Assembly (NCBI GenBank): GCA_946965045.2
Contig: OX337230.1
Coordinates: 1,550,001 to 1,614,000 of the forward strand
From: Epithemia pelagica
Lineage: Eukaryota > Protista > Bacillariophyta
DNA: 64,000 nt
Reading direction: 5' to 3'
The notes under the pieces are model-generated. The model worked only from the letters and a program-made list of their open reading frames with translations, was not told where the DNA came from and searched no databases. The position numbers and the translations under genes are program-made. Every line of letters begins with the position of its first letter. The stretch's first letter is position 1. Of the stretch, positions 1,284-20,486 are shown one piece after another.

Positions 1284-1911
1284 TGTTGAAGATGCTTTCT
1301 TTTGCTTTAATGGGCAATCCGAAGGATGATATTGTGTGGATCTTGAGTTGCTGAGCGCTGAGCGGGAAACAACGAGATTTCAAAATTCAGCTTGTCAATG
1401 ACGGCTACAGGTATAGATCTTCGCTCTTGACAGCGAATTACAAGTCACGCGGCGCGACACAACCGCTGCAGTACAATTTATTTGATATTGAATCTCCAGC
1501 TAAACTGCACTATCGAAATGGGTTGTGTAAGAAAGCGAGAGTACTTATTGCGTCTGCTCGCCACCAGCGAGAGCATTGCACATGCTTGACACCACGCGCG
1601 TGGCAGCTGTCGGTTGTAGGGGGTGTTAGTTTTCCAAGGCAGCAATATGATTGGGTTAGACATGTCACACAACAATTAAACACTTAACGAAAAACGAGTT
1701 AAAAATGTCTTACCTCGATTTAAAACCAATCCCACGAAGGCCCCGAATCACGGATTGGCAGCAAGAAAAAAGCCAAAAAAACCTCCAAGTTGGATTCCAT
1801 CAGCCGATCGAGGCGGTCGCTCGCGCCATTGTCGACAAAACACAAGACGACAACAAGACATTGACCACTTTCTGGCCATCTCAGACCTGTAGACAACGTA
1901 ATCGAATAAAG

Positions 1912-4900
1912 ATGGTTAGTAGGTCATCCTCTGGTGCTGTGCAATCATTTGCAGCAGCACAAAGTGCTGCAAGAGCAGCAATGGGTCCCCAGTCGCAACG
2001 ACTGGGCAACTTGTATAGTCGACTCCCTGTTCGACACGGACAACGACGCTCTGGTTATCAAACACTTACCGGAGTCGTGGAGTTTCAACAAGAGATTGAT
2101 TGTTGTGTGTGTAGAGCCAAACACAACAACCTCCCCAAACCACACAGATCCCACCACATGCTCTGTCCACTCAACACCAAAACAAAGGGAAAACCACACA
2201 AGACAAACGAACTCGGACAGATCAAGAGACTGGTGGATAAAGCAGCGAAGGAGAGGGAAAGAAACAACAAACAACCATTGTCTGAAGCTGAAAAGCACAG
2301 ACCAGGGATCACCATGGAGGACTGGGAGGACTTCATGAAGCCGCGTCCCAATACGGCCAAAAAAGTGTTGAACCCAGGAAAACTCACTCTAGAGTCGTTG
2401 ACAGGTGAGAAGTTGGCAGAAGGGAGAATGGGCGAAATCAGCAACGGTCAAAGTGTGACAGTGACAGAGCTGCGCATGTCGGCTGAAAATTTCAAAAAGG
2501 AAATATTACATAGGGTTACACATGGTACATTCAACGGTATCACGTGTCCCAAGACAATGCATGCGCTTGCCTCATTTATGCAAGAAGCGTGCCTGGGGAC
2601 AAAGCGTGATACGAGTGTGCTATCAAACTTCTTTGACGGTATGGAGTTTTGTGTACCGGCCTGCGCTACCAACACGTGTGCTTTGTACGACTCGTTTTCT
2701 CGCCAGAAACTCTTGGTTGTGGATTGGGAACTCTTTTTTCCTGGAGAAGTACTCTTTTGCCCTCTATGCAATGGTAAACTCCATCGGACACGGAGTAATT
2801 TCTCCAAAAACAAGTGTCTTTTCCCCCTATTCGGAAGCTCTGGTCCCCCAAGATACGCCATTGTCATGCACTATAGGTGCTCGGCATGTAAAACATGCTT
2901 CCAAGGGAATGAAGGACGATTTTTAGCAAAACTCCCACCTTGGATGGCCATGGCATACCCTGTGGAGCCAAAGTACGCTCGTGGGATGGCACATCTTACT
3001 CGAGATGCTACCCACATGCTAGAACACTCTATGCTGACCTACGGCAATGGAGATTATTTTTCTAGAATGATCTACAGTGGTATCAATACAGACTACAAAG
3101 ACAGACAAACGAGGTACTATTCATTCTGTGCATCCACCGGCCAAAAAAGTGAGGACTATCCCAAAAAGGATGGCGAGTGGCTGGTCAACTTCCCTCCACA
3201 AGGTGACACCATCCGTCAGCTGTATGACGATGCGGCTAGTTCCAATTGGAATTGGTGGGGTCTGTCGGATCATGATAGACACACGAGAGAAATGCAAATG
3301 GTGAGATGCGAACGAACATTTGCGAATGATCATACTCACCAGACAGTGAAAAACTATCCCTCAGCCTGTAAGGCAAAGGCCCTGTTTGACGTAGCCAACG
3401 AAAAAGGTGAGATCGCCTGTGCTATTCTCGTTGAAAATACCAAAATCCAGGAAGTGAGCCATGCTGTCGAACAGCTTGCTCGTCGGCCATGGTTTCGTCC
3501 GAAGGCCATGTATACTGATACATGGCCTTCTTCCATTGACTTCTGGGTCTTGATTTGGGGTGACGAGGTGAAGGGTTGCCTCGGCCTGTTTCATTTCCTG
3601 CAGAGAATTGTGAAGACTCTGCGACCAAGACACATTGATTATGGGCGAGCACTCCGTGATCTCAAAATGGCCCTGTATGAGTATAACGATGAGGATATGA
3701 ATAATGTCCTTCAAGCGCTGAAAGAAGGAAAAATGTCAAGTAGCAAGAAACAATACACTGAGGGTGAGATACAGGATCTGCTCGACACTCCAGAGTTTGG
3801 ACGAAGGTATGGAAAGTACATACGAAAAATGATCCGCTCGAAAGAAGTCATCATTGCGAAGCTGGAAGAATTCAAAGTGACCTATAAGGTCACTGCCTCA
3901 CCAGGCAAGCCATCAGCAAGAGGTCGACGAGATCCGCGGACAAATCAACCTCTATTTACGGAGGATACTCATCTCGCGATAGAAAATTGCAAACAAAAGG
4001 CAGTGTATTTGTCAGATCCACTACCACTTGAAGACATGTATTTGACAGTTGCAGCCAACAAGAATTCACGCCACTCCTTACCTGAATACATTGCAGTCAG
4101 AGGGGAATCCAAGTTGGAGAGCTTCCACGACAACCTGGCAAACTTTGCAAATTGTGGAATGCGTGAGAGCCTTGCAGACAATCTTAACCTACAGGGAACA
4201 GCGCAGTACAATCTTACCATTCGATTCAAGCATCGCTTGCTTGCAATGACTCTTGATGAGCGATCTCTTGTTCCAGCCGGATGGGAATGTGTGGTTCCTT
4301 ATTGGAACCACACTGAACTGCGATTCATCAATGAAATGGCTGTGAGTTCTGGATCGCAACAACAATTTCAATGGGTTGAAAACTTACCAGAAGACACTGG
4401 TGAACGCTTTTTTTCGGAATACTTGGCACAACAGAGCAGACGGAAATTGGAGATTCCGAAGCATCCACTCAATGACCGCTGTCAGTGTTGCTTGTGTGCC
4501 AAGTCTGTTGTGCGCCTTCCCCACGACAAGTCCTTTCACCCACCACCAGCACCTACTCTTTCAACACTACCACCAGTCCAAACAGTACAGGGGATGATTG
4601 TTAACCCGTACCGAAAGAGGACACCATCAAATAACAGTGATGAAACAAACCGAGACAATGAGCATGACAAGAGAGAGGAGAATGAGAAAAATGAGAGTGA
4701 GGACGGCAATTCCCCCAAAAGCAGTCCAAACAATCAGAGTGAGGGGTTGTTGTGTGTTCCGATTGTGGGAAATCCAACAGCAGTCGAATCCGAAAAAGAG
4801 CAGCATGTACAGAAAAACCAAAATGCCAGTGAGAAGGAGACGATAACAACAATGGAATCTGGTGACAGTGAGCCTCGACAGGAGGAGAGTACTTACATCA

Positions 4901-5439
4901 AGAATGTGGGTGAGCAAGAACCAAGTGAGACTCGGCCGCTGGTTCCACAAGCACAACAACAAGAACAGGCTGGGGAAGCACGTCACCAAGAAAGTAGCAC
5001 CAGTCAAACAAAGAAGCGAATGAGAGAAGAGAATCAACAAGAACAAGAAAGAGCACAACATAGGCGTGAGATTATGCAACAACTAAATAGTGCACGATTC
5101 AGCTCTGGTTTTGGAACAGTCAACAAGAACGACAGAGTCACCAGCACACCAGCAAGAATCACAACCACAAACACAACACATGCGCAACAAGAACTTACAA
5201 CAATGACAACAAGCCAAGCAAGTGGGCCATTGGCTCAAACACTTTTGGCTCTGTCGTTGCTGATGCCAAATTTAGTTCAACAGCAGCACCATGCCGCGAC
5301 CACAGCTTGGATGCGGCCAACCCCACGAAACCAACGGCAATTCTGTTGTCCGAAGTATTTTGAATACTTCGAGAATGGAAAGCGTGGGAGACCTCATCAC
5401 AACAAAGACTGCCCCAACAAAAATACCAAGAAGCCTTGA
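1912..5439 (+). CDS. Dada-like DDE transposase (frame open from 1705; probable start MVSRS at 1912)
   Basis: Motifs FANDHTH (D, ~3328), ANEKGEI, MYTDTWP (D, ~3517), LGLFHFLQR (xxxH, ~3592), RGESKLESFH (E, ~4117). Cys/His clusters CCVCRAKH..HH.LCP, CPLC..C..C, CQCCLC and C-terminal CC..GRPHH..CP. Confidence 0.8.
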   Translation: MVSRSSSGAVQSFAAAQSAARAAMGPQSQRLGNLYSRLPVRHGQRRSGYQTLTGVVEFQQEIDCCVCRAKHNNLPKPHRSHHMLCPLNTKTKGKPHKTNELGQIKRLVDKAAKERERNNKQPLSEAEKHRPGITMEDWEDFMKPRPNTAKKVLNPGKLTLESLTGEKLAEGRMGEISNGQSVTVTELRMSAENFKKEILHRVTHGTFNGITCPKTMHALASFMQEACLGTKRDTSVLSNFFDGMEFCVPACATNTCALYDSFSRQKLLVVDWELFFPGEVLFCPLCNGKLHRTRSNFSKNKCLFPLFGSSGPPRYAIVMHYRCSACKTCFQGNEGRFLAKLPPWMAMAYPVEPKYARGMAHLTRDATHMLEHSMLTYGNGDYFSRMIYSGINTDYKDRQTRYYSFCASTGQKSEDYPKKDGEWLVNFPPQGDTIRQLYDDAASSNWNWWGLSDHDRHTREMQMVRCERTFANDHTHQTVKNYPSACKAKALFDVANEKGEIACAILVENTKIQEVSHAVEQLARRPWFRPKAMYTDTWPSSIDFWVLIWGDEVKGCLGLFHFLQRIVKTLRPRHIDYGRALRDLKMALYEYNDEDMNNVLQALKEGKMSSSKKQYTEGEIQDLLDTPEFGRRYGKYIRKMIRSKEVIIAKLEEFKVTYKVTASPGKPSARGRRDPRTNQPLFTEDTHLAIENCKQKAVYLSDPLPLEDMYLTVAANKNSRHSLPEYIAVRGESKLESFHDNLANFANCGMRESLADNLNLQGTAQYNLTIRFKHRLLAMTLDERSLVPAGWECVVPYWNHTELRFINEMAVSSGSQQQFQWVENLPEDTGERFFSEYLAQQSRRKLEIPKHPLNDRCQCCLCAKSVVRLPHDKSFHPPPAPTLSTLPPVQTVQGMIVNPYRKRTPSNNSDETNRDNEHDKREENEKNESEDGNSPKSSPNNQSEGLLCVPIVGNPTAVESEKEQHVQKNQNASEKETITTMESGDSEPRQEESTYIKNVGEQEPSETRPLVPQAQQQEQAGEARHQESSTSQTKKRMREENQQEQERAQHRREIMQQLNSARFSSGFGTVNKNDRVTSTPARITTTNTTHAQQELTTMTTSQASGPLAQTLLALSLLMPNLVQQQHHAATTAWMRPTPRNQRQFCCPKYFEYFENGKRGRPHHNKDCPNKNTKKP

Positions 5440-5458
5440 CGGATTGTCCATGGCAATG

Positions 5459-5535
5459 GCTTGTCCATTTTGCCGTTGCTGGCAGGAAGGAGGATCCAGC
5501 CACATCACCGAAATATCATGGCGGATGTGGCTCAA
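5459..5535 (+). ncRNA. Candidate structured RNA element (two covarying hairpins) just 3' of the E1 transposase stop
   Basis: Hairpin A TGCCG-ttgc-TGGCA (5471-5484) and hairpin B AGCCACAT..ATGTGGCT (5498-5532). E3 has different but still paired stems with conserved linkers. Expression not shown. Confidence 0.5.
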
Positions 5536-6377
5536 GCACAAAAAGGAAAACCAAGAAATCCATCACACCAAACCCATGCACCACACCACAAAGAAGAAAA
5601 AGACACAAAACCATTAAGATGAGACGACCCGTATACCTGAAATAAGAAGAACTAAAACATAAGATGAAGAATGAGTTAGAAACATGCCTGTTCAAAAATT
5701 ATGAGAGCGATCTTTCGGTAGATTTTTGTGTCAACGATCGACGTACAGAGCACACATGAAGCTTACCATGGACAGACGTCTTGTACGTTCGTCGAGCGTT
5801 GACCACTGATGTAAGCACAGAAATTTCTGAACTAAGACCAAAATCATTTATGGTGATTGAAGGGGAGGTGCCTTCGCCCCTCATGACAGAGAGTTAAACC
5901 AGATGCAAGGGTTAGACAAGACATGGTAATTCAGCCAATGAGAGTGGAACCGACTAGGATGCAGAAAACGACGGAATCTTACCATTTTGAACGTTGGGAA
6001 TCTCTTCCTTTTTTCTTCCTCTCTTTTTTTCCCTCCCCTTTTTCCCTTCTCTCTTCTGCCTTGGCCCCCCCCATTTTCGTTGTAGGGGGTGTTAGTTTTC
6101 CAAGGCAGCAATATGATTGGGTTAGACATGTCACACAACAATTAAACACTTAACGAAAAACGAGTTAAAAATGTCTTACCTCGATTTAAAACCAATCCCA
6201 CGAAGGCCCCGAATCACGGATTGGCAGCAAGAAAAAAGCCAAAAAAACCTCCAAGTTGGATTCCATCAGCCGATCGAGGCGGTCGCTCGCGCCATTGTCG
6301 ACAAAACACAAGACGACAACAAGACATTGACCACTTTCTGGCCATCTCAGACCTGTAGACAACGTAATCGAATAAAG

Positions 6378-9300
6378 ATGGTTAGTAGGTCATCCTCTGG
6401 TGCTGTGCAATCATTTGCAGCAGCACAAAGTGCTGCAAGAGCAGCAATGGGTCCCCAGTCGCAACGACTGGGCAACTTGTATAGTCGACTCCCTGTTCGA
6501 CACGGACAACGACGCTCTGGTTATCAAACACTTACCGGAGTCGTGGAGTTTCAACAAGAGATTGATTGTTGTGTGTGTAGAGCCAAACACAACAACCTCC
6601 CCAAACCACACAGATCCCACCACATGCTCTGTCCACTCAACACCAAAACAAAGGGAAAACCACACAAGACAAACGAACTCGGACAGATCAAGAGACTGGT
6701 GGATAAAGCAGCGAAGGAGAGGGAAAGAAACAACAAACAACCATTGTCTGAAGCTGAAAAGCACAGACCAGGGATCACCATGGAGGACTGGGAGGACTTC
6801 ATGAAGCCGCGTCCCAATACGGCCAAAAAAGTGTTGAACCCAGGAAAACTCACTCTAGAGTCGTTGACAGGTGAGAAGTTGGCAGAAGGGAGAATGGGCG
6901 AAATCAGCAACGGTCAAAGTGTGACAGTGACAGAGCTGCGCATGTCGGCTGAAAATTTCAAAAAGGAAATATTACATAGGGTTACACATGGTACATTCAA
7001 CGGTATCACGTGTCCCAAGACAATGCATGCGCTTGCCTCATTTATGCAAGAAGCGTGCCTGGGGACAAAGCGTGATACGAGTGTGCTATCAAACTTCTTT
7101 GACGGTATGGAGTTTTGTGTACCGGCCTGCGCTACCAACACGTGTGCTTTGTACGACTCGTTTTCTCGCCAGAAACTCTTGGTTGTGGATTGGGAACTCT
7201 TTTTTCCTGGAGAAGTACTCTTTTGCCCTCTATGCAATGGTAAACTCCATCGGACACGGAGTAATTTCTCCAAAAACAAGTGTCTTTTCCCCCTATTCGG
7301 AAGCTCTGGTCCCCCAAGATACGCCATTGTCATGCACTATAGGTGCTCGGCATGTAAAACATGCTTCCAAGGGAATGAAGGACGATTTTTAGCAAAACTC
7401 CCACCTTGGATGGCCATGGCATACCCTGTGGAGCCAAAGTACGCTCGTGGGATGGCACATCTTACTCGAGATGCTACCCACATGCTAGAACACTCTATGC
7501 TGACCTACGGCAATGGAGATTATTTTTCTAGAATGATCTACAGTGGTATCAATACAGACTACAAAGACAGACAAACGAGGTACTATTCATTCTGTGCATC
7601 CACCGGCCAAAAAAGTGAGGACTATCCCAAAAAGGATGGCGAGTGGCTGGTCAACTTCCCTCCACAAGGTGACACCATCCGTCAGCTGTATGACGATGCG
7701 GCTAGTTCCAATTGGAATTGGTGGGGTCTGTCGGATCATGATAGACACACGAGAGAAATGCAAATGGTGAGATGCGAACGAACATTTGCGAATGATCATA
7801 CTCACCAGACAGTGAAAAACTATCCCTCAGCCTGTAAGGCAAAGGCCCTGTTTGACGTAGCCAACGAAAAAGGTGAGATCGCCTGTGCTATTCTCGTTGA
7901 AAATACCAAAATCCAGGAAGTGAGCCATGCTGTCGAACAGCTTGCTCGTCGGCCATGGTTTCGTCCGAAGGCCATGTATACTGATACATGGCCTTCTTCC
8001 ATTGACTTCTGGGTCTTGATTTGGGGTGACGAGGTGAAGGGTTGCCTCGGCCTGTTTCATTTCCTGCAGAGAATTGTGAAGACTCTGCGACCAAGACACA
8101 TTGATTATGGGCGAGCACTCCGTGATCTCAAAATGGCCCTGTATGAGTATAACGATGAGGATATGAATAATGTCCTTCAAGCGCTGAAAGAAGGAAAAAT
8201 GTCAAGTAGCAAGAAACAATACACTGAGGGTGAGATACAGGATCTGCTCGACACTCCAGAGTTTGGACGAAGGTATGGAAAGTACATACGAAAAATGATC
8301 CGCTCGAAAGAAGTCATCATTGCGAAGCTGGAAGAATTCAAAGTGACCTATAAGGTCACTGCCTCACCAGGCAAGCCATCAGCAAGAGGTCGACGAGATC
8401 CGCGGACAAATCAACCTCTATTTACGGAGGATACTCATCTCGCGATAGAAAATTGCAAACAAAAGGCAGTGTATTTGTCAGATCCACTACCACTTGAAGA
8501 CATGTATTTGACAGTTGCAGCCAACAAGAATTCACGCCACTCCTTACCTGAATACATTGCAGTCAGAGGGGAATCCAAGTTGGAGAGCTTCCACGACAAC
8601 CTGGCAAACTTTGCAAATTGTGGAATGCGTGAGAGCCTTGCAGACAATCTTAACCTACAGGGAACAGCGCAGTACAATCTTACCATTCGATTCAAGCATC
8701 GCTTGCTTGCAATGACTCTTGATGAGCGATCTCTTGTTCCAGCCGGATGGGAATGTGTGGTTCCTTATTGGAACCACACTGAACTGCGATTCATCAATGA
8801 AATGGCTGTGAGTTCTGGATCGCAACAACAATTTCAATGGGTTGAAAACTTACCAGAAGACACTGGTGAACGCTTTTTTTCGGAATACTTGGCACAACAG
8901 AGCAGACGGAAATTGGAGATTCCGAAGCATCCACTCAATGACCGCTGTCAGTGTTGCTTGTGTGCCAAGTCTGTTGTGCGCCTTCCCCACGACAAGTCCT
9001 TTCACCCACCACCAGCACCTACTCTTTCAACACTACCACCAGTCCAAACAGTACAGGGGATGATTGTTAACCCGTACCGAAAGAGGACACCATCAAATAA
9101 CAGTGATGAAACAAACCGAGACAATGAGCATGACAAGAGAGAGGAGAATGAGAAAAATGAGAGTGAGGACGGCAATTCCCCCAAAAGCAGTCCAAACAAT
9201 CAGAGTGAGGGGTTGTTGTGTGTTCCGATTGTGGGAAATCCAACAGCAGTCGAATCCGAAAAAGAGCAGCATGTACAGAAAAACCAAAATGCCAGTGAGA

Positions 9301-9905
9301 AGGAGACGATAACAACAATGGAATCTGGTGACAGTGAGCCTCGACAGGAGGAGAGTACTTACATCAAGAATGTGGGTGAGCAAGAACCAAGTGAGACTCG
9401 GCCGCTGGTTCCACAAGCACAACAACAAGAACAGGCTGGGGAAGCACGTCACCAAGAAAGTAGCACCAGTCAAACAAAGAAGCGAATGAGAGAAGAGAAT
9501 CAACAAGAACAAGAAAGAGCACAACATAGGCGTGAGATTATGCAACAACTAAATAGTGCACGATTCAGCTCTGGTTTTGGAACAGTCAACAAGAACGACA
9601 GAGTCACCAGCACACCAGCAAGAATCACAACCACAAACACAACACATGCGCAACAAGAACTTACAACAATGACAACAAGCCAAGCAAGTGGGCCATTGGC
9701 TCAAACACTTTTGGCTCTGTCGTTGCTGATGCCAAATTTAGTTCAACAGCAGCACCATGCCGCGACCACAGCTTGGATGCGGCCAACCCCACGAAACCAA
9801 CGGCAATTCTGTTGTCCGAAGTATTTTGAATACTTCGAGAATGGAAAGCGTGGGAGACCTCATCACAACAAAGACTGCCCCAACAAAAATACCAAGAAGC
9901 CTTGA
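6378..9905 (+). CDS. Dada-like DDE transposase, E2 copy (frame open from 6171)
   Basis: Translation identical to the E1 ORF in the supplied track. Confidence 0.8.
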   Translation: MVSRSSSGAVQSFAAAQSAARAAMGPQSQRLGNLYSRLPVRHGQRRSGYQTLTGVVEFQQEIDCCVCRAKHNNLPKPHRSHHMLCPLNTKTKGKPHKTNELGQIKRLVDKAAKERERNNKQPLSEAEKHRPGITMEDWEDFMKPRPNTAKKVLNPGKLTLESLTGEKLAEGRMGEISNGQSVTVTELRMSAENFKKEILHRVTHGTFNGITCPKTMHALASFMQEACLGTKRDTSVLSNFFDGMEFCVPACATNTCALYDSFSRQKLLVVDWELFFPGEVLFCPLCNGKLHRTRSNFSKNKCLFPLFGSSGPPRYAIVMHYRCSACKTCFQGNEGRFLAKLPPWMAMAYPVEPKYARGMAHLTRDATHMLEHSMLTYGNGDYFSRMIYSGINTDYKDRQTRYYSFCASTGQKSEDYPKKDGEWLVNFPPQGDTIRQLYDDAASSNWNWWGLSDHDRHTREMQMVRCERTFANDHTHQTVKNYPSACKAKALFDVANEKGEIACAILVENTKIQEVSHAVEQLARRPWFRPKAMYTDTWPSSIDFWVLIWGDEVKGCLGLFHFLQRIVKTLRPRHIDYGRALRDLKMALYEYNDEDMNNVLQALKEGKMSSSKKQYTEGEIQDLLDTPEFGRRYGKYIRKMIRSKEVIIAKLEEFKVTYKVTASPGKPSARGRRDPRTNQPLFTEDTHLAIENCKQKAVYLSDPLPLEDMYLTVAANKNSRHSLPEYIAVRGESKLESFHDNLANFANCGMRESLADNLNLQGTAQYNLTIRFKHRLLAMTLDERSLVPAGWECVVPYWNHTELRFINEMAVSSGSQQQFQWVENLPEDTGERFFSEYLAQQSRRKLEIPKHPLNDRCQCCLCAKSVVRLPHDKSFHPPPAPTLSTLPPVQTVQGMIVNPYRKRTPSNNSDETNRDNEHDKREENEKNESEDGNSPKSSPNNQSEGLLCVPIVGNPTAVESEKEQHVQKNQNASEKETITTMESGDSEPRQEESTYIKNVGEQEPSETRPLVPQAQQQEQAGEARHQESSTSQTKKRMREENQQEQERAQHRREIMQQLNSARFSSGFGTVNKNDRVTSTPARITTTNTTHAQQELTTMTTSQASGPLAQTLLALSLLMPNLVQQQHHAATTAWMRPTPRNQRQFCCPKYFEYFENGKRGRPHHNKDCPNKNTKKP

Positions 9906-9924
9906 CGGATTGTCCATGGCAATG

Positions 9925-10001
9925 GCTTGTCCATTTTGCCGTTGCTGGCAGGAAGGAGGATCCAGCCACATCACCGAAATATCATGGCGGATGTGGCTCA
10001 A
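9925..10001 (+). ncRNA. Candidate structured RNA element, E2 copy
   Basis: Same sequence as 5459-5535 at +4466. Confidence 0.5.
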
Positions 10002-10845
10002 GCACAAAAAGGAAAACCAAGAAATCCATCACACCAAACCCATGCACCACACCACAAAGAAGAAAAAGACACAAAACCATTAAGATGAGACGACCCGTAT
10101 ACCTGAAATAAGAAGAACTAAAACATAAGATGAAGAATGAGTTAGAAACATGCCTGTTCAAAAATTATGAGAGCGATCTTTCGGTAGATTTTTGTGTCAA
10201 CGATCGACGTACAGAGCACACATGAAGCTTACCATGGACAGACGTCTTGTACGTTCGTCGAGCGTTGACCACTGATGTAAGCACAGAAATTTCTGAACTA
10301 AGACCAAAATCATTTATGGTGATTGAAGGGGAGGTGCCTTCGCCCCTCATGACAGAGAGTTAAACCAGATGCAAGGGTTAGACAAGACATGGTAATTCAG
10401 CCAATGAGAGTGGAACCGACTAGGATGCAGAAAACGACGGAATCTTACCATTTTGAACGTTGGGAATCTCTTCCTTTTTTCTTCCTCTCTTTTTTTCCCT
10501 CCCCTTTTTCCCTTCTCTCTTCTGCCTTGGCCCCCCCCATTTTCGTTGTAGGGGGTGTTAGTTTGCTCAGGCAGCAATATGATTGGGTGAGACCATGTCG
10601 TTCCACACAAAACACTTAAAGGAAAACTCAGAACGACATGTCTTACCATTTCAAAAATCAGTCCCCCATCGCCCCCCAAACACGGATTGGCAGCTTGAAA
10701 ATCTCACCAAGTGAGATTCCAAGTGCCGATCCGGTCGGTCGCGGCCGCCAAGTCTCATCTCGGAAAGACGACAATGAGACATTGGCCACTTTTCTGGCCA
10801 TCTCATCTCGTCGATGACACACCTGTAGAAAACGTAATAGAAAAG

Positions 10846-13800
10846 ATGGTTAGTAGGTCACACCAAACAACACAATCTTGGGCTGCTCAACAGGCTGCAG
10901 CAAGGGCGGCAATGGGCCCCCAATCCCAACGACGAGGGAACATTTACAGTCGCTTGCCAGTGCCACAGGGGCAGCGACGCTCGGGCAACCAAACCATGAC
11001 AGGAGTAGTGGAGTTTGAGCCCCACATAGACTGTTATGTCTGCAGGGCTGTCCACAATGGACAAAACAAGCCACACAGAGCCCACCACATGCTCTGTCCA
11101 CTCAACAAAACAACAAAGGGCAAGGCAAAGACACAGGAGAAGGGCCAGATCCAACGACTGCTCGACAAAGCAGCAAAACAACACAAGAAGAACAACAATA
11201 GGCCAATGAATGGCACAGAACAACTCACCCCAGGCAATGTCAGTGAGGAGGCACTGGGTGCCTTTTTTTCTGTTCGCAACAACACGACGAAACAAGTGAA
11301 GACAACGGGCAAGCTCACGTTGGAGTCGTTGGCGACGAAGAAAAAGCCAGTAGAAAGGAAGGTTGGGAAAACATGTGACAGTCACATACCAACAAGTGCA
11401 CGCATGTCGGTCGAAAATTTCAAAACAGAAATTCTACATAGGACAAACATGCTGGTTGAGGCGAGTTCGATTGCTCCCAAGACCATGCGGGCTCTCGCGT
11501 CACTTATTCAGGACACGTGCCTTCGTTCAAAGCGGAGTACAACGGTTCTAGAAGCTTTTTTCGAAGGTATGGAGTTTTGTGTACCGGCTTGCTCTAGGAA
11601 CACGTGTCCTTTGTACGACTCGTTTGTGGGACAGAAACTCTATGTAGTAGATTGGGAACTCTTTTTTCCAAACCAAGTACTGTTTTGTCCTACATGTGGA
11701 GGTAATCTCCAGCGGACGCGGACTAATTTCTCCAAGAACAAGTCGCTTTTCCCCCAATTCGGAATAAATGGTCCCCCAAGCTACGCGATCGTGATGCACT
11801 ATAAGTGCTCGGCATGTGGTGCCAATCACCAAGGCAACGAATCGCAATTTCTCGCGAAACTTCCTCCCCACATGGCCATGGCGTACCCAGTCGACCCGAA
11901 ATACGCGGTCGGCAACTCGCACCTCAAGACTGACGCGACGAGACTCATGGAGCGGCTCATGGTGACTCATGGGAATGCAATTCTATGTGCAGAATATCTC
12001 TATGAATCAATCAACCAGTGCTATATGGACAAAACTATGAGATTCTACTCGGAGCTCCTAGCGACAGACCAAGCAAGTGACCAACCTTATCCAAAGAAGG
12101 ATGGCGAATGGCTCGTGTCTTATCCCCCTCAAGCGGACACCCTTCGTCAGATATACGAGCAGGGTGCTTACTCAGACTCTGTGTGGTGGGGAGTATCCGA
12201 TGTTGACCGACACCAGCGAGAAATACAAATGGTGAAGTGTAGATTATCGTTTGCTCAGGACCACACCTGGGAGGTGGTCAAGAACTACCTTTCCAGTTGC
12301 AAGGCAAAGGTCCTGTGGGATGTTTGCACCGAGACAGGCGAGATTGCCTGTCTTGTCTTGGTGCAATCAACAAAGCTGCAAGAGATTGCCCATGCAGCAG
12401 AGCAATTGTCGCGTCGTATCGGGTTTTCTCCCGTAATTATGTATTCCGATACCTGGCCCCACAAGGATGACTTTTGGGAACTGATACTTGGAGCACGGTT
12501 GATTGGCAGGTTGGGGTTATTTCATTTTTTGCAGCGAATTACAAAGACGCTTCGACAGCGTCATTGCGACCATGGGCAAGCACTTCGTGATTTGAAGGCT
12601 TGCATCTATGAAGAGCACGATGAAGACTTTCAGAAAGTCATCCATGCCCTCAAGACCGGATTGTTGGGAAAGGAATACACAGAAGAAGAGATTTGTGAGA
12701 TGAGAGCAACGAAAGTCTTTGCTCAACGATACAACAAATACATACGAAAAAGGATTCGTTCGGCCGAAGTCATCAAAGGGAAACTCGACGAATTCAAGGT
12801 GAGGTACAAAGTCACCGCCTCAGATGGACAACCAGCTGCTCGTGGCCGTCTTGACCCAAAGTCGGGCCAGACTCTCTTCACTCCAGAAACACACGATGCC
12901 CTGGTGAATTGCAAAGAGAAGGCTCAGTTTTTGGCCGACCCAAAACCAATCGAAGAGATGTATTGTGAGTTGCCACCGAATCGCAATGCAAAACATGGTC
13001 TCCCTGAGTTTCGTGCTTACCGTGGCGAGAGCAAGTTGGAGTCGTTTCACGACAACCTTGCTCATTTTGGGAACTGTGGGATGCGCGAGTCATTGGCAGA
13101 TGCACTAAATTTGTGCGGAACTGCCAGGTACAATCGTACCATTCGACACAAGCTCGCTCTGTTGGATATGAATCCAACAGAGCGAGCGCAAATCCCAGCT
13201 GGATGGGAGTCGGTTGCGCCGTTTGACAACCACTTGCAACTCGAATTTATAAACAAAATGGCAAGGGCAACTGGTGTTAGTGGGCCATTCGCCAACGTAG
13301 AACAAATCCCAGAGGACAACGGAGAACGATTTTTGTCTACTTACCTCAAGCAACAAATGGAAAGAGACAAAACCGTGCCAAAGCATCCGCTCAATGATCG
13401 CTGTCAGTGTTCGTTGTGTCAGGGCAATGCCAAGAGATTGCCCCATGACAGCTCCATTCCACCCTTTGCTTCGTCAGCTTCCTCCTCGTCTGTTGTTGTG
13501 TCTGCTTCATCACCAACCATGGCCGAGATTTATTTGAATCCGTATTTTCCCCAAAGAGGACGGAAACAACCCAAGAGCACCGTCCAAAGCGAAGAAATAT
13601 CCGAAGAAATAGACAACAGCATCAGTTGTTGCGGTGATGTAGCACCAGAACAGTCGGTTCCGGTTGCGAAGGACGCAAACAAACGAAAAGCCGGCAACAA
13701 CACAACAACAGAATCCAACAATCCATCCAAAAAGCAACGCATAGAGCAGCAAACGAATGCGACAGAAACTGGTGAGATGGAAGCTACACCAGGAAATGCA

Positions 13801-14172
13801 ACAAGGGAAGTGGTAAGCTTACCTTCTTTGTCACGACAACAGGCCCAGTTGCATACGGCGACACAGCAGAGCAACACGCAACAAACAAAACAAACAACAA
13901 ATCACCATGCACCACCAGCACAGCAATGCAATCGTCCACCATTCTTTGGACTCCCTGTTGCCATGGCCAAGTACTCCAACCTGTTGCCGCCACCACCACT
14001 CCATCCAGCTTTGTACCCGTGCCATCCGTTCGGCTATCCTCATCGTCCATCGCCACGAACTCAAATCCAGTTTTGTTGCGTGAAGCACAAAGAATACTAC
14101 GACAGTGGCAAGAGGGGACGACCACCACACAGCAAAGACTGTCCAAAGCGGAATTTCCGAGGCTTCGATTGA
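10846..14172 (+). CDS. Dada-like DDE transposase of E3 (track ORF from 10711; homologous start MVSRS at 10846)
   Basis: FAQDHTW, CTETGEI, MYSDTWP, LGLFHFLQR, RGESKLESFH, CQCSLC and CC..GRPPH..CP all align with E1; uninterrupted frame. Confidence 0.8.
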   Translation: MVSRSHQTTQSWAAQQAAARAAMGPQSQRRGNIYSRLPVPQGQRRSGNQTMTGVVEFEPHIDCYVCRAVHNGQNKPHRAHHMLCPLNKTTKGKAKTQEKGQIQRLLDKAAKQHKKNNNRPMNGTEQLTPGNVSEEALGAFFSVRNNTTKQVKTTGKLTLESLATKKKPVERKVGKTCDSHIPTSARMSVENFKTEILHRTNMLVEASSIAPKTMRALASLIQDTCLRSKRSTTVLEAFFEGMEFCVPACSRNTCPLYDSFVGQKLYVVDWELFFPNQVLFCPTCGGNLQRTRTNFSKNKSLFPQFGINGPPSYAIVMHYKCSACGANHQGNESQFLAKLPPHMAMAYPVDPKYAVGNSHLKTDATRLMERLMVTHGNAILCAEYLYESINQCYMDKTMRFYSELLATDQASDQPYPKKDGEWLVSYPPQADTLRQIYEQGAYSDSVWWGVSDVDRHQREIQMVKCRLSFAQDHTWEVVKNYLSSCKAKVLWDVCTETGEIACLVLVQSTKLQEIAHAAEQLSRRIGFSPVIMYSDTWPHKDDFWELILGARLIGRLGLFHFLQRITKTLRQRHCDHGQALRDLKACIYEEHDEDFQKVIHALKTGLLGKEYTEEEICEMRATKVFAQRYNKYIRKRIRSAEVIKGKLDEFKVRYKVTASDGQPAARGRLDPKSGQTLFTPETHDALVNCKEKAQFLADPKPIEEMYCELPPNRNAKHGLPEFRAYRGESKLESFHDNLAHFGNCGMRESLADALNLCGTARYNRTIRHKLALLDMNPTERAQIPAGWESVAPFDNHLQLEFINKMARATGVSGPFANVEQIPEDNGERFLSTYLKQQMERDKTVPKHPLNDRCQCSLCQGNAKRLPHDSSIPPFASSASSSSVVVSASSPTMAEIYLNPYFPQRGRKQPKSTVQSEEISEEIDNSISCCGDVAPEQSVPVAKDANKRKAGNNTTTESNNPSKKQRIEQQTNATETGEMEATPGNATREVVSLPSLSRQQAQLHTATQQSNTQQTKQTTNHHAPPAQQCNRPPFFGLPVAMAKYSNLLPPPPLHPALYPCHPFGYPHRPSPRTQIQFCCVKHKEYYDSGKRGRPPHSKDCPKRNFRGFD

Positions 14173-14176
14173 TCCG

Positions 14177-14250
14177 GGCTGTCCATTTGTCGAGACGACA
14201 GGAAGGAAGATCCAATGGCACACCGAAAGACATGGCGATGCCATCCAGCC
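14177..14250 (+). ncRNA. Candidate structured RNA element, E3 version
   Basis: Hairpin A TGTCG-aga-CGACA (14188-14200); hairpin B ATGGCA..TGCCAT (14215-14244) enclosing CACC-GAAAGACAT-GGCG. Confidence 0.5.
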
Positions 14251-15182
14251 ATCACAACCAATCCACCCACCCAAAAACCACCTTCATTACCACCACTGCA
14301 TGCCCCATCATCGCTCCAATTACAAGAACTTAAAAAATGAATCGACCAACAACCTGAATACCTGAATGACCAAGAACACAACAAGCACGACAAGATAGTT
14401 AGTAACAAAAATACGAAAAACAGAATTTATGAGACATCCATATCTTCTCTAGCCACCGTAGCACATGGAAAGGGCACCCGGAAAGTGACAAGGCTCTTGC
14501 GGAATTCGGGTGTCAAGTCAAACCTGTTGAACGACAGACAATTAAAGGTGAGAGGCCAATAAAGACAGAATGTTGCTACCGGTCTTGTAAGGGGAAATAT
14601 GCTTCCACGTACTTACCTGCCTGATCCCCCTCTGAGGACATGAAAGGTGATGTTACGACATGTCACAACAATCCTCGAAAATGCGAATGAAACGATCGAA
14701 CCAGAACGATGGAATCCAGCTGCCAAAACTCTCCCCTTTTTCCTCCCCTTCTTCTTCCTCTCCTCCCCCTCCCCTTCTCTCTTCTGCCTTGGGCCCCCCC
14801 ATTTTCGCTGGCAGCCATCCAGGCGAAAAAGACAGGGGGAGGAAATTCTCCCCGGGGGAAATAGTCCCTACATTCCTAATATATCGGCACCAATACCATA
14901 GCGATGGAGCGCAGCGACAAAAATAATTCGTGCGAGCGAAGCGAGCTTAGCTGCGCGATCTCTACACGAACGACGCGAAACAAACAATGGCGAACGCAAC
15001 AAGACAAACATGGTTATCCCAACACGTGGCCACCCTCCTTCAACCACCACACTAGTTCGACCAAACACGACATGGCTGAACTCGGAGTCCTTTTTCTGTT
15101 TGATTGGCTGTTCTTGTGTTTCTGCTTTGATTGCGGCACGAGTTTGCCTTGTGTCCGTCGTAATGACAAGGACGAGCTTCCC

Positions 15183-15645
15183 AATTTCTCGAATGATGAG
15201 TGGTTAATATTTCATTTTGGAAGAAACTAAAACAGATTGGGATGGGTCATCTGGCCCATGGGAACGATGATCCTGGGCCAAGACATTTCTCGAATGACGA
15301 GTGGTTACCTAAAATCCTGAACGAAACTAAAAAAGATTGGGACGGGTCATCTGGCCCATGGGTACGATGATCCTGGGCCAAGCCATTTCTTGAATGACGA
15401 GTGGGTTACCTAAAATCCCGAACGAAACTAAAAAAGATTGGGATGGGCCATCTGGCCCACTGGGCCAAGCCATTTCTCGAATGACGAGTGGGTTACCTAA
15501 AAACTTGAACGAAACTAAAAAAGATTGGGATGGGTCATCTGGCCCATGGGTGTGATCATCCTGGGCCAAGCCGTTTCTCAAAAAACTTGAACGAAACTAA
15601 AAAAAGATTGTAATGGATCATCTGGCCCATGGGTACGATGATCCA
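15183..15645. repeat. Tandem repeat of ~100-bp units (about 4.5 copies, later units shortened) in the 3' subterminal region of E4
   Basis: GAAACTAAAA recurs at 15223, 15323, 15424, 15511, 15593; each unit carries TGGCCCA...TGGGCCA. Confidence 0.9.
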
Positions 15646-15734
15646 TGAAGTCGGCATCCTTGACGCACGATTGTTGCTACCTCCTCCACCTTCGAGAAAG
15701 CCTCCACGGCCACCACTGCTTATGAAACTAACAA

Positions 15735-18700
15735 TCAGCCACTGCCCTGAGTGCATTTTCCGATTTGCCAAGCACCAGGACACTCATCTTGACTTTTCCC
15801 GCACATCCTACATGTTCGCTTCCGCCGCTTCGCTTTATCTCTTCCCCGTTTGCTCGCAGTGATAGCAGGTTGGTTAGTGAAGGTTCCATTTGAATTGGCA
15901 CCTACTTGCGTATTTGCGACTACTCGTGTTCCTCTTGCTCTAACAGTTGGTACTGGAAATGTTGGACAGGGTGTATTTTGTGGCAGCGGCCAGTGTACTA
16001 TCTGGGCTGTGTCTGGAGGTTCTTGATGGTCTGGCAACCAAACAACAGTTTGATCAGCATCATTTACTTCGTCAGTGTCTTCACCATTTTGGTTCATTGG
16101 TTTAATCCGACTTGCCATCGGATAACCGGGAAGAGAAAGCTCGCGAAGCCGTGAAATTTCCTCTGCCATCGATGCAACAGCGTCCTCCATCCGCAGATTT
16201 TGTTGGAATATTTCCTTGTACGTTCTCAAATACACAGGCAGTTTTGGCAGAATTGATTTACCATTGACCCGTTCAAGCCATCGAATGGCCATTTTTTCCA
16301 AATCATCAAGTAGGGCTGGCGTATCAAGAGCTAATTGCCGGAAGGCTCTCATCTCGTCTCGACTTGTGATTGGCGTAAATGGAAGCTTCACACTTTGATG
16401 TTTGGCAAGATATCTTTGTTCTCTGGTCAATGGTATATCATCAAGAGGAAGCGAATTCACTGCATCCGTCAACAAGGTTGGTTGTAGCGGAATGACTCCG
16501 CATGACTCTTCCGTTTGTGTATAGTCCCCGCTATTCACCCAGGTTGGAAAGACCAGAGTGTTATGGTTTTTTTCAACCAGATACTGAATTGCATCAATTA
16601 ACCACGTGTCAAAGTGCCCCACTCTTGGAAACCCAGCGCGCCTCCTTTCAGCCATTCGGTGATTGTACCGATGGCGATGTTCTTGTCAAAGGCACCAATA
16701 AACTGGCAAACCCAAGTAGTTTGATGACTCTTCACCCCTTCGGTTGATTTTCCGAACGTACATTGAAAAACCTGATGGGTCAGACACGTAGCCTTGTAGA
16801 ATTTCCTTGAGTACATTGTCTGCTTTTTTCCATGCTCGGTTGTTGAAAAGAGGCTTGTTGTCATCCAATTTGTTTCCGAACGCAAGATAGACATTCCTCA
16901 CCCTCCAGTAGAGCTGACTCGGTGGCAGTACAACTCTTGGCACGCACTCTAAACAAAACAACGTTCTGTAGTACATCATTGCTTCAATTTCTTGGTTTGA
17001 TTTGCCATCATTCCGAAGTGCTTTCTTTGCTCTATCCAAGGCGTCTGGGTCCCAGGCAAAGAACGCTTGTGACAGAGCAACAAAAAAGGCCTTCCGAAAC
17101 TTGTGCTTCACCGGCACTTTTATGCGATCCATGTAATGCCACGGATCTCCCAACACAGATCTGAATTTATCAACAATTGCTTCTGGAGGACTAGAAAGAT
17201 GAGAATTCTCTAAGGCAAAGCTGTCTTTGGATAGTGTCTCAAGATATTCAATGATTACCATCTCGTCACGAGTCAAACCACTCCGGAAATTAAGGTCTCT
17301 CTCGAACAAGTTTCCAGAATTGTCATTGCCCGTCATATTAGTTGCAGCCATTTCATGCTGATTCACATCCACATTGTTTGCAGTGAACGTTGGACCGATA
17401 TCCTCCATATTTTCGTCTCCACCACTTTCTATTCTCTCATTTGAGAGATCGCAATCATCCACCAGTATTTGCCATTTTGGTTCCAACGGTGCTGGAGTAT
17501 CCTCAGTCCTTTCATCATTTCCGTTATCCATTTCATTATCAGAAGGAGATGCTTTATGTAGCTTCAACATCGTTGTGGGGATTCGTACACGAAAAGGTTG
17601 GCCATCTAGGGCAGTATCTTGGAAATGGCCAATCGTGGCTGCCTTTCCATCTCCAGTGGTAAAACCAGGAATTCTCAGAAATGGTCCAAGAACTTTCTTG
17701 ACTTCGACAATGCAGCTGTTTGTTGCTTGCCCTGACAACCTTGGCTTGAGAACAACCGGTTCCTGCCAGTTTGGATCATTGACAATAGTGCCAATTGCTG
17801 CAATTGGGGCCTTTTCAGCGTCACCTGTAGTACCGCGAGATGGGATAACATCAACCTTAGTTCCTGCTGTAGCATTGTCCTTCTCCAGTCGATGGGCATA
17901 GTCCGGGAAACTGATTAGCTTTAGGTAACATTCTAAGGACTTGATTGCGTCAAGAGCAGCATACTCTAGCTGCTCTACCGCGAGATTTGAATTACCCCAT
18001 TTGGAAGAACGGACACTGTCATCCTTACTCATCCTCTCCTGTAGTAACAACTCAACCAGTGCCTTCAAACCAATTCTAGCATCATGCACAAGGTCTCGGT
18101 CTTTTGCAAGTCGAGCAATGTCCATACACTTCACGGTGTCTGTCACATCCCGAATGCCAAAGTCGTCACCAACTATTCGAATGTCACCAAGCACCCTCTT
18201 GCCGACAAATGTAATTGTACTATCTCTGAACAAATCCAGCAATGAATCTGGCAACCTTGGTAGTTGCCTTACATGCAAAAGCAGGGCTTTGATTGACCCG
18301 GACTCATTTTTGTATGCAATCTGCAATAGCCCAACTTTGTCCCGACCGTGTGGAGGAAACTTTGTTTTCGACCCATATTCGTGTTCCTCATCAAATCCAA
18401 GCACCCGATCTTCAATCGGGCGTGAGTTCAGCTCTTGCCAAAGTAGTGCAATGGCCCTGTCAATCTCTTGCATAGATTTTACCGAGTGGTAGTCAGTCGC
18501 TTCAACAGAACATATTGGAATGTTGCCAGGTGTATTCTCCACGTGCATTGCAACTGTTGGTGTGGTTGAATTCAACTGCGTTTCCATTTTCTTCAGTGAT
18601 GGCAAATGCTGACTGAAGAATGCAATATCTTCATTAGGTTTGTCCGTAAACAAGAATTTTGGATGCGCAAATCCATACGCAGAGAGAGTTTCCTTGACAC

Positions 18701-20015
18701 TGGCCAAGGCACAGACCATTTGGTCATGGCCGTCAGTAACCACATGAAACTGAAGCCGAACTTCACCAAGTTCATTGGTTGCCGTGACAAGGCCTCGAAA
18801 GACTCTGCCTCCTCTGAATCGAGTTAATTGTTTAGCTTCTTTATAGGATACGTCCCAGCGAAGAACTGAAGCTGTCCTTTTTTTAAGCTCACGAAGCATG
18901 TGGTCTTCCAGCGAATTTTCATATAACTTGAATGCATGACTGAGGTAGTTTGGAGAACAAGTTCGACCGGCATAGAGCTCTCTATTCGTGAAATTGCTAA
19001 ACATAGAAACTTCAAGGGCTGGATTGAATTGTCTCTTTCTTGCTATTTCATTCTCTCTCTGTAATCACTTCCGACTGTGAGTTTTCCGACTAAGCTCGTC
19101 TATCAACGCAGCCATCTGCTTGGGACGAATCCCCAAAATGAAGAGGGATCGCATCAGATCAACAACTGTATTGTCCAGACCCGACTTGTGCGTCAAAAAT
19201 GCTGGAAAATATGACCCTGCATTGTAAGGCAAGGTGGTAAGTATGGCTTCAGAACTTCCAATCCAGGTATATGGATCGTCCTGTCTTTTGTCGCGCTTTT
19301 CCTTGCACTCCTTGCATATGTATCGGCGTGCCATTACAAAGTAGTGGCCTGTTAATGACTGCACCCGCCGTGCCACATGGTCTGGCCAACCGTGTGTACA
19401 AACAGTTTTCTTGCAATGAGTATTTGGACATTGGAAAAGTCCCCAATGAATATCTGGGAGCCAGACAAAGACATCTCGGTAATAACCCTCCTCTGAAAAC
19501 TCAATTGAGAGATTAGAACAAATTTTTTTTGCATGGTATGTGCGAATCCAATAATCATTTGTTTGTAGCATTGTGGTTAGCCAGCGATCAACAAGCTGAT
19601 TGTTGATTGCCGATGTTTCCTTCTGTATTTGTTGACGAATTGCCCTCAAATATCGATCCACAATGGAATTGGCCTCTTCTTCAATGTCCACTTCTTGAAA
19701 ATTATCTTCATCAGGCTCATCAGTCGACTCATCATCACTGTCGTCAAAATTGTCATCATCAAAGTCATAGCTATGGTCAATGTCCCTCTCTTGCAAGTTG
19801 TCTTCGACTGCATTGTCATTCAAGTGATTTCTTGCAGGGCCAAAATATTGGTGGAGGAAATTGACCTGTCGGTTGGTTTGGTGCCTCTCTCTGATCCTCC
19901 TTAGGCGTGCTTCCCTCCTCTCTGCATGAGTTTTTGTTGTTCCAACAGGACGACCACGTCCTCTTTTTCCATTCGGCATTGTCGGCATGTTGTGTGCAGG
20001 TGCAGATAACCACAA
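15735..20015 (-). pseudogene. Dada-like transposase with internal DEDDy 3'-5' exonuclease; two in-frame TGA stops and loss of the catalytic-E segment
   Basis: Track ORFs 19065-20015, 16686-19004 and 15735-16655 share one frame, separated by TGA at 19065-19067 and 16686-16688. Motifs: CP..C, LRWDVSYK (D), TNELGEVR, LFTDKP (D), exonuclease VLGFDEE / VLGDI / EYAALDA, LGDPWHYMDR (DxxH), HRYNHR..GFPRVGHFDTW. No RGxxxxE between YWCL and QEHRH. Confidence 0.8.
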
Positions 20016-20486
20016 CTAGAAATGCTATGAGCACTAAGGTATCACGACTGGGCTCTTGCATTGGTAAGCAGTCGTGGAGCCGATGTCTCTGGACGACTAA
20101 AAAACCAAAAGCCCTGTCCTAATGCTAAGTAATTGAGGTAGGTATTTGGTTTTTTAGCGTCGCACCAAGAATAAAACCGACCAATCATATGACTTCATTC
20201 AGACCAAAAGCCTCCACCGCTATGGTATTGGTGCCAAAATACACTCCTTTTTTACTTCAGTAGCTACTCCTAGCTAGAGGATTTAGAAGGCGACCTAGAG
20301 GAGTATTGTATTAACGGTGACAGACAGTGACACATAGACTGACACCAGTGAACAGACGGTGTCCTTTCGGGAAGGCTAGGGCCTCATCTCGGCACTGGGT
20401 ACTCCATCCGACAACACGTTGATCATGTTGCTCAGTTAAACTGAGAGGCTGATCAACTGGACACGTCTAAGAACTGATTTGTCGTT

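Follow-up and report, generated by a model that had tools for sequence, protein, structure and literature searches.

Dada elements are DNA transposons that encode one large transposase, with a DDE triad, an xxH signature after the second D and zinc fingers in the N- and C-terminal parts (PMC3706591; PMC8869645). They are devoid of terminal inverted repeats (TIRs); inverted repeats of 9 bp lie in subterminal position, at equal distances from the flank repeat, which is a target-site duplication (TSD) of 6–7 bp (PMC3706591; PMC8869645). For the U6 and U1 families, Kojima and Jurka (2013, PMC3706591) noted that one of the two subterminal arms is also found in the target, equally far from the insertion, and Kojima (2022, PMC8869645) inferred that the Dada protein binds mostly on the downstream side. 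Mixed-family tandem arrays with a duplication between the members were described for Dada-U1A/U1B (their Fig. S3), and a replacement of the flank repeat, at one end or at both, for Dada-tA and Dada-tY, the repeats of Dada-tL being also irregular (PMC3706591; PMC8869645). Kojima speculated that such a flank was "transposed with" the element (PMC8869645). Among prokaryotic systems, the IS256-type transposase is distantly related to Dada (C/DxxH group, PMC3706591). We describe here an array of three Dada-like elements in the diatom Epithemia pelagica, contained in a stretch of 64,000 nucleotides (nt) of contig OX337230.1 (assembly GCA_946965045.2, positions 1,550,001 to 1,614,000), hereafter the window. 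The elements of this genome join their right tip at a fixed distance from a motif of the kind found in their own left end, and the array was probably built by insertions directed to such ends.

Layout of the array and of its targets

The three elements E1, E2 and E3 are head-to-tail units. Elements like E1 constitute family A, those like E3 family B, and a third group family C; their copies were searched in the whole genome assembly (60.5 Mb, 23 contigs). The array reads as follows:

1613–1619, no strand: spacer copy 1, GTTGTAG, left flank of the array
1620–6078, plus strand: E1, family A Dada-like element of 4459 bp, no TIR, tips GGGGTG...CATTTTC
6079–6085, no strand: spacer copy 2, GTTGTAG, at the E1/E2 junction
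6086–10544, plus strand: E2, family A, 0 mismatches to E1 over 4459 bp
10545–10551, no strand: spacer copy 3, GTTGTAG, at the mixed-family E2/E3 junction
10552–14806, plus strand: E3, family B element of 4255 bp
14807–14812, no strand: 6-nt slot GCTGGC right of E3, unlike the spacer

A second reading of the window sequence confirmed GTTGTAG at 1613, 6079 and 10545, and GCTGGCA (14807–14813) directly after the right tip of E3, as an earlier, sequence-only reading of this DNA had reported. The chance of each additional exact copy of the 7-mer is about 6e-5, so that three copies are not a chance occurrence. Each GTTGTAG is followed by GGGGTGTTAGTTT, the start of all three elements. The right tips, at 6078, 10544 and 14806, consist of CTGCCTTGG and 14 nt, and a C-run followed by ATTTTC closes all three elements. 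No substitution separates E1 from E2, the other family A copies being 18–32 mismatches away, and the exactly repeated unit, made of the spacer and the family A element, measures 4466 bp. The protein of E3 is 53% identical to that of E1, which places the two in separate families. The junctions have 20 nt in common, corresponding to the spacer and the first 13 nt of the family A and B left ends.

The motifs on which the target rule depends are located at the following positions:

1634–1642, plus strand: left subterminal motif CCAAGGCAG of E1, 14 nt from the tip; matching position in E2
6056–6064, plus strand: right subterminal motif CTGCCTTGG of E1, reverse complement of the left motif, 14 nt from the tip
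10566–10574, plus strand: left motif CTCAGGCAG of E3, 14 nt from the tip
14784–14792, plus strand: right motif of E3, 14 nt from the tip
14827–14835, plus strand: AAAAGACAG, left-end mimic in the right flank, +21 to +29 from the E3 tip, in the genome-wide register

The tips themselves are unpaired: the TIR check gave pairing for the 9-bp subterminal inverted motif only. The distance from the left tip to the motif was 14 nt in 25 of 25 element copies. At the right end it was 13–18 nt in 7 of 25, because the length of the poly-C tract differs there. The symmetrical 14-7-14 geometry of the sequence-only reading is present in this array and is not general, the spacers of other arrays being 5 or 6 nt long.

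To read the targets, 19 right flanks were aligned on the element tip, and GGCAG was scored when at least four of its five bases matched. A GGCAG-like motif was present at position +25 in 11 of the 19 flanks, versus three or fewer at any other offset. When only independent non-element sites were kept (two real elements dropped, one paralogous pair counted once), the motif was found at +25 to +29 in 8 of 16, compared to a background of 2.8% (binomial P = 4e-9). This shows that the elements join their right tip where a GGCAG-type motif follows 24 nt downstream, the target being composed of a 6-nt slot, 14 nt and xxxxGGCAG. The preferred target is organized like the left end of the elements themselves, so that a resident left end is the best possible target. 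No mirror-image signal, that is, no right-end mimic, was seen in the left flanks, which fixes the orientation and accounts for the head-to-tail arrangement of all junctions. In the window, AAAAGACAG corresponds to 8 of the 9 bases of the family C motif AAAAGGCAG, and as it lies in exact register, the right joint of E3 looks like a normal targeted joint. The fixed-distance left-end mimic in the right flanks supports the second possibility raised by the earlier reading, repeated insertion at the elements' own end junction.

Among the 41 left ends of the three families in the genome, eight have a right end 5–7 nt before them. The spacers of these eight junctions are GTTGTAG (twice, in the window), GCTCG (three times, in one array), ATTCAG, GTGGAA and GAGTAG. 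Two further family A copies are followed, after 6 nt (GCAATA, AGCCGG), by a left end belonging to a fourth family. Junctions between families were found at four loci, the partners and the spacers differing among them. Each array has its own spacer: GTTGTAG belongs to no element and is probably a local flank sequence that was reused. Two possible sources of the spacers were rejected. No template for GTTGTAG was found in the elements or their vicinity, the only other copy lying inside a neighbouring transposon (14886–20235), and a 9-mer match at 19867 does not exceed what chance would give; nor do spacer 6-mers seem to be copied from element ends, exact matches (CCCCCA, GATTGG) not exceeding the expected frequency by our own estimate.

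Three other loci showed particular structures. A C-A-B mixed array (L049/L050, G000:C7:2966500-2986000) is located between two 1.2-kb direct repeats, 99.8% identical, which may be the long terminal repeats of a host retroelement. At L043 (G000:C6:3487850-3494250), the family B left end, on the minus strand, displays a perfect 30-nt tandem duplication covering a flank GGCAG and the first 25 nt of the element, with the flank GGCAG and the GGCAG of the subterminal motif at matching places in each duplicated unit. At L002 (G000:C7:2188936-2196397), a foldback of about 430 bp (a long inverted repeat, CCTCGTCTCGGG...CCCGAGACGAGG) abuts the slot left of a family A copy.

Construction of the array and origin of its flanks

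We propose that the three elements were stacked head-to-tail by end-directed insertion, which we consider the probable history of the region. The family B element E3 would have inserted first, landing at the mimic AAAAGACAG (14827–14835), and is probably the founding and oldest member. A family A element would have come next, immediately upstream of the genuine left end of E3, and the 7 nt already there (GTTGTAG) would have been left on both sides of it. The unit of 4466 bp, GTTGTAG plus the family A element, would then have been doubled very recently, making E1 identical to E2. This doubling may have occurred by a second self-targeted insertion, by unequal exchange over 20 identical bases or by reintegration of a circle. 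The members of the C7 array, too, resemble one another more closely (3–12 differences) than they resemble outside copies (at least 23).

The outer flanks are unique in the genome, aside from the neighbouring transposon which starts at 14886, and they share a 7-mer:

1601–1607, no strand: TGGCAGC, left flank, 12 nt before E1; second copy at 14809–14815, 2 nt after E3

By our estimate, flanks as short as those compared would have a 7-mer in common by chance in about 1% of cases. It is possible that this outer pair is a relic of a founding 7-bp duplication.

Several observations weigh against the proposed history. No empty allele of the locus was found, either in the genome or in metagenome contigs with the exact left-flank 23-mer and the left-end pattern, so that the prior presence of GTTGTAG at the site is only presumed. 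The 7-nt spacer puts the GGCAG of E2 and that of E3 at +26, one position off +25; the same off-by-one spacing seen twice favours a unit duplication rather than another, independent insertion. Family A elements placed upstream of another element in the C7:2966500 array and at the C5 copy have a left flank unlike their spacer, and the duplication rule was kept in about 8 of 10 junction tests. Lastly, the outer TGGCAGC pair, together with GCTGTC at 1606–1611, which resembles the right slot GCTGGC, suggests that the array may have been founded in a less simple way.

The flanks of other copies are informative in this respect. Both flanks were read for 15 solitary copies and three arrays. Perfect repeats differing from site to site (GGGCGG, ACCAAG, TTTTCAG, TGCGA, TGGCAG, ATTGGA) border six of the 15, and in two more the repeat is perfect except for one extra base. 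About half of the copies in the genome, E3 among them, are without a clean flank repeat. The youngest family C siblings, 2–4 substitutions apart, are also without one, indicating that the irregular flanks are not due to decay. In several copies, 1–4 additional nt separate the tip from the repeat, or the slots agree in their last three bases only, and 1–4 extra nt or 3+3 hybrid slots are present already in the very young copies L036, L038 and L042. A search for empty paralogues of L036 and L038 found none.

A dispersed repeat with the end-mimic AAAAGGCCG in its last 30 nt or so provided a direct comparison, being occupied twice by family B at the same position (C5:3021349 and C6:3493872) and empty at G000:C1:2869414, C2:774864 and C4:1480342. 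The three empty copies read GATTTTTAGAAAAATAGATCGTGCGAT, in which the predicted slot is AAAATA. In one occupied copy, ...AGAAA-CCCCCA precedes the element and CCCCCG-GATCG follows it; in the other, ...AGAAAAA-TGGCAG and TGGCAG-GATCG are at the same places. The 6-mers on both sides of these two family B copies are provably not target sequence. TGGCAG, the non-native 6-mer of one of them, is also present, as TGGCAGC, near the window array. These two copies thus show, on both sides, the TSD replacement known from Dada-tA and Dada-tY, and the mismatched right flank of E3 is the behaviour published as one-sided TSD replacement in Dada. The earlier statement that a classical TSD is not made can thus be kept in part: the AAAATA repeat shows that the flanking 6-mers are not always derived from the target, and the six solitary copies with perfect repeats contradict its general form.

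These junctions led us to consider that the excised element keeps nucleotides of the donor flank, for instance as 5' overhangs of the length of the stagger, which would be ligated at the new site. The flanks would then come from the donor, the target or a mix of both on either side, and GTTGTAG would have arrived with the element. We find this unlikely. The two family B insertions in the AAAATA repeat, with CCCCC(A/G) or TGGCAG on both sides and part of the native slot kept upstream, speak for it, as do the extra nucleotides or hybrid slots of L036, L038 and L042, and all the observed junction classes would follow from donor overhangs of stagger length. At small offsets, TGGCAG is likewise found on both sides of the window array. 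The fish elements Dada-tA and Dada-tY behave in this way, and Kojima's speculation of a flank "transposed with" the element goes in the same direction. However, apart from the TGGCAG coincidence, no flank 6-mer is common to copies of the same family at different loci; a donor flank that usually prevailed would give families sharing a flank, as Dada-tA does, and none was seen. The explanation is also flexible enough for almost any junction, and there was no direct sign of overhangs or of circles. Extended to the superfamily, it would mean that Dada transposases leave donor-flank bases in competition with gap filling, so that the "duplications" are donor/target mosaics, and that recognition of the end motif adds homing to left ends, and arrays; we put this forward as a doubtful proposal.

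An origin of the array by means other than targeted insertion appears less likely still. The composite could have arrived whole, with the left end of E1, the right end of E3 and a few flank bases, or the array could have grown by unequal recombination or circle reintegration only. The identity of E1 and E2 in an exactly repeated 4466-bp unit agrees with such growth, the 20 nt common to the spacer and left tips could support unequal exchange, and the outer TGGCAGC pair fits a 7-bp duplication around a composite carrying 12 and 2 extra nt. Recombination cannot, however, bring a family with 53% protein identity beside another, and mixed junctions exist at four loci; moreover, the right tip of E3 is in the exact register of the mimic, whereas a joint based on TGGCAGC is 2–3 nt out of register.

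Finally, a fixed GTTGTAG core owned by the element and exchanged with the target as in site-specific recombination, which the earlier reading had put forward, is refuted: the window has three identical copies, one of them at a mixed-family junction, but GTTGTAG is on neither side of the other four family A and five family B copies read, six other spacers are used at the remaining junctions of the genome, and the solitary copies with perfect, site-variable repeats, named beforehand as evidence to the contrary, were found at six loci.

Transposase and relation to Dada

Each element carries a single long open reading frame (ORF); that of E1 is located as follows:

1705–5439, plus strand: transposase ORF of E1, 1244 aa

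The E1 protein shows a CxxC...CxxC zinc finger at residues 352–398 (CPLC...CSAC) and a CC...H..C arrangement near the C-terminus (1214–1236). The same N-terminal CCCC and C-terminal CCHC zinc finger motifs are present in the E3 protein. Between them, the E1 blocks NDHT (541–544), YTDTWP (603–608), LGLFHFLQRI (626–635) and RGESKLESFH (799–808) matched by eye the blocks MDSTKKV, LYVDRDCC, LDVWHFMRRF and RGSTSLESFH of Dada-U6_DR (Dataset S1, PMC3706591), which represent its D1, D2, DxxH and E blocks; the zinc fingers could be lined up with those of Dada-U6_DR in the same manner. E1 has GxxH where Dada has DxxH, the D being replaced by G. A Pfam search with the element proteins gave no match, even at E = 10, and the closest Atlas clusters were chordate DUF6729 proteins (score 0.97), which we take as a lead only.

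On this by-eye comparison, E1–E3 would be TIR-less DNA transposons of the Dada superfamily. Their other features point the same way: TIRs are absent and the short subterminal inverted repeats are equidistant from the flank repeat, duplications of the expected 6–7 bp are represented by perfect 5–7-bp repeats at 6 of 15 solitary copies (the others being irregular), and one subterminal arm is mirrored in the target at the same distance. One departure from Dada concerns the insertion into multicopy small RNA genes: no tRNA gene or Rfam family was found within or beside the array, and the flanks of the other copies are unrelated sequences. A search of the literature available to us found no account of Dada in diatoms.

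Some family B frames are irregular. In most copies of this family, including the one in the window (10638–10711), the first ATG, although conserved, and the long ORF are in different frames. In E3, a C-run is shorter by one C, and L039 is the only family B copy in which the long ORF is open from near its start.

To the right, the array is separated by 79 nt from another transposon, which leaves only these 79 nt of unique right flank:

14886–20235, minus strand: transposon outside the array, perfect 18-bp TIRs GGCACCAATACCATAGCG / CGCTATGGTATTGGTGCC, minus-strand ORFs

This element contains internal tandem repeats of about 100 bp at 15184–15644, and copies of its left part, 98–99% identical, are located on two other contigs.

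Comparison with known systems and significance

The diatom elements share with the described Dada elements the anatomy of their ends, the arm in the target, the mixed tandem arrays and the TSD replacement. They differ in their targets, which are generic end-mimics, including their own left ends, and not tRNA, snRNA or 5S genes. They also differ by GxxH in place of DxxH, by an ORF without introns, by replacing 6-mers that vary among copies where Dada-tA has one fixed GCGCAA, and by the presence of about 20% of their left ends in head-to-tail arrays. The mechanism, which the sequence-only reading had considered unusual for a eukaryotic transposon, is not unusual for Dada, as mixed tandem arrays and TSD replacement are already found in PMC3706591 and PMC8869645.

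With IS256, IS30 and IS911, the common point is the abutment of right and left ends around a spacer of about the length of the target duplication. In contrast with these systems, the diatom arrays have been stable enough to accumulate 3–12 substitutions between members, and no circles were observed here, circle and array junctions looking alike in an assembly. Circularisation of a single element cannot yield mixed-family junctions. PiggyBac, in which TTAA is always carried (as 5' overhangs) and targeted, offers a model for an excised element that carries flank bases of the length of the target stagger; it is unrelated in sequence, and in the diatom the flank bases are arbitrary and their carrying is only inferred.

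No new kind of mechanism is involved beyond that outlined in the Dada papers. The novelty lies in the occurrence in a diatom, in the absence of targets among RNA genes, in an end-mimic rule that could be quantified and in flanks shown by paralogues not to come from the target. The donor-overhang explanation, if true, would be a sequence-agnostic analogue of the TTAA carry-over of piggyBac and would explain a TSD replacement puzzle dating from 2013.

To our knowledge, Dada is the only superfamily of DNA transposons with a strict choice of target, and the way in which the target is picked has only been guessed at. Epithemia pelagica offers about 40 young and mostly intact copies, belonging to three families whose targets are not RNA genes, so that the target rule can be read directly. 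This rule explains the head-to-tail arrays as self-homing, and the clean case of the empty paralogues brings the TSD replacement puzzle within reach of experiments, in an alga that can be grown in culture.

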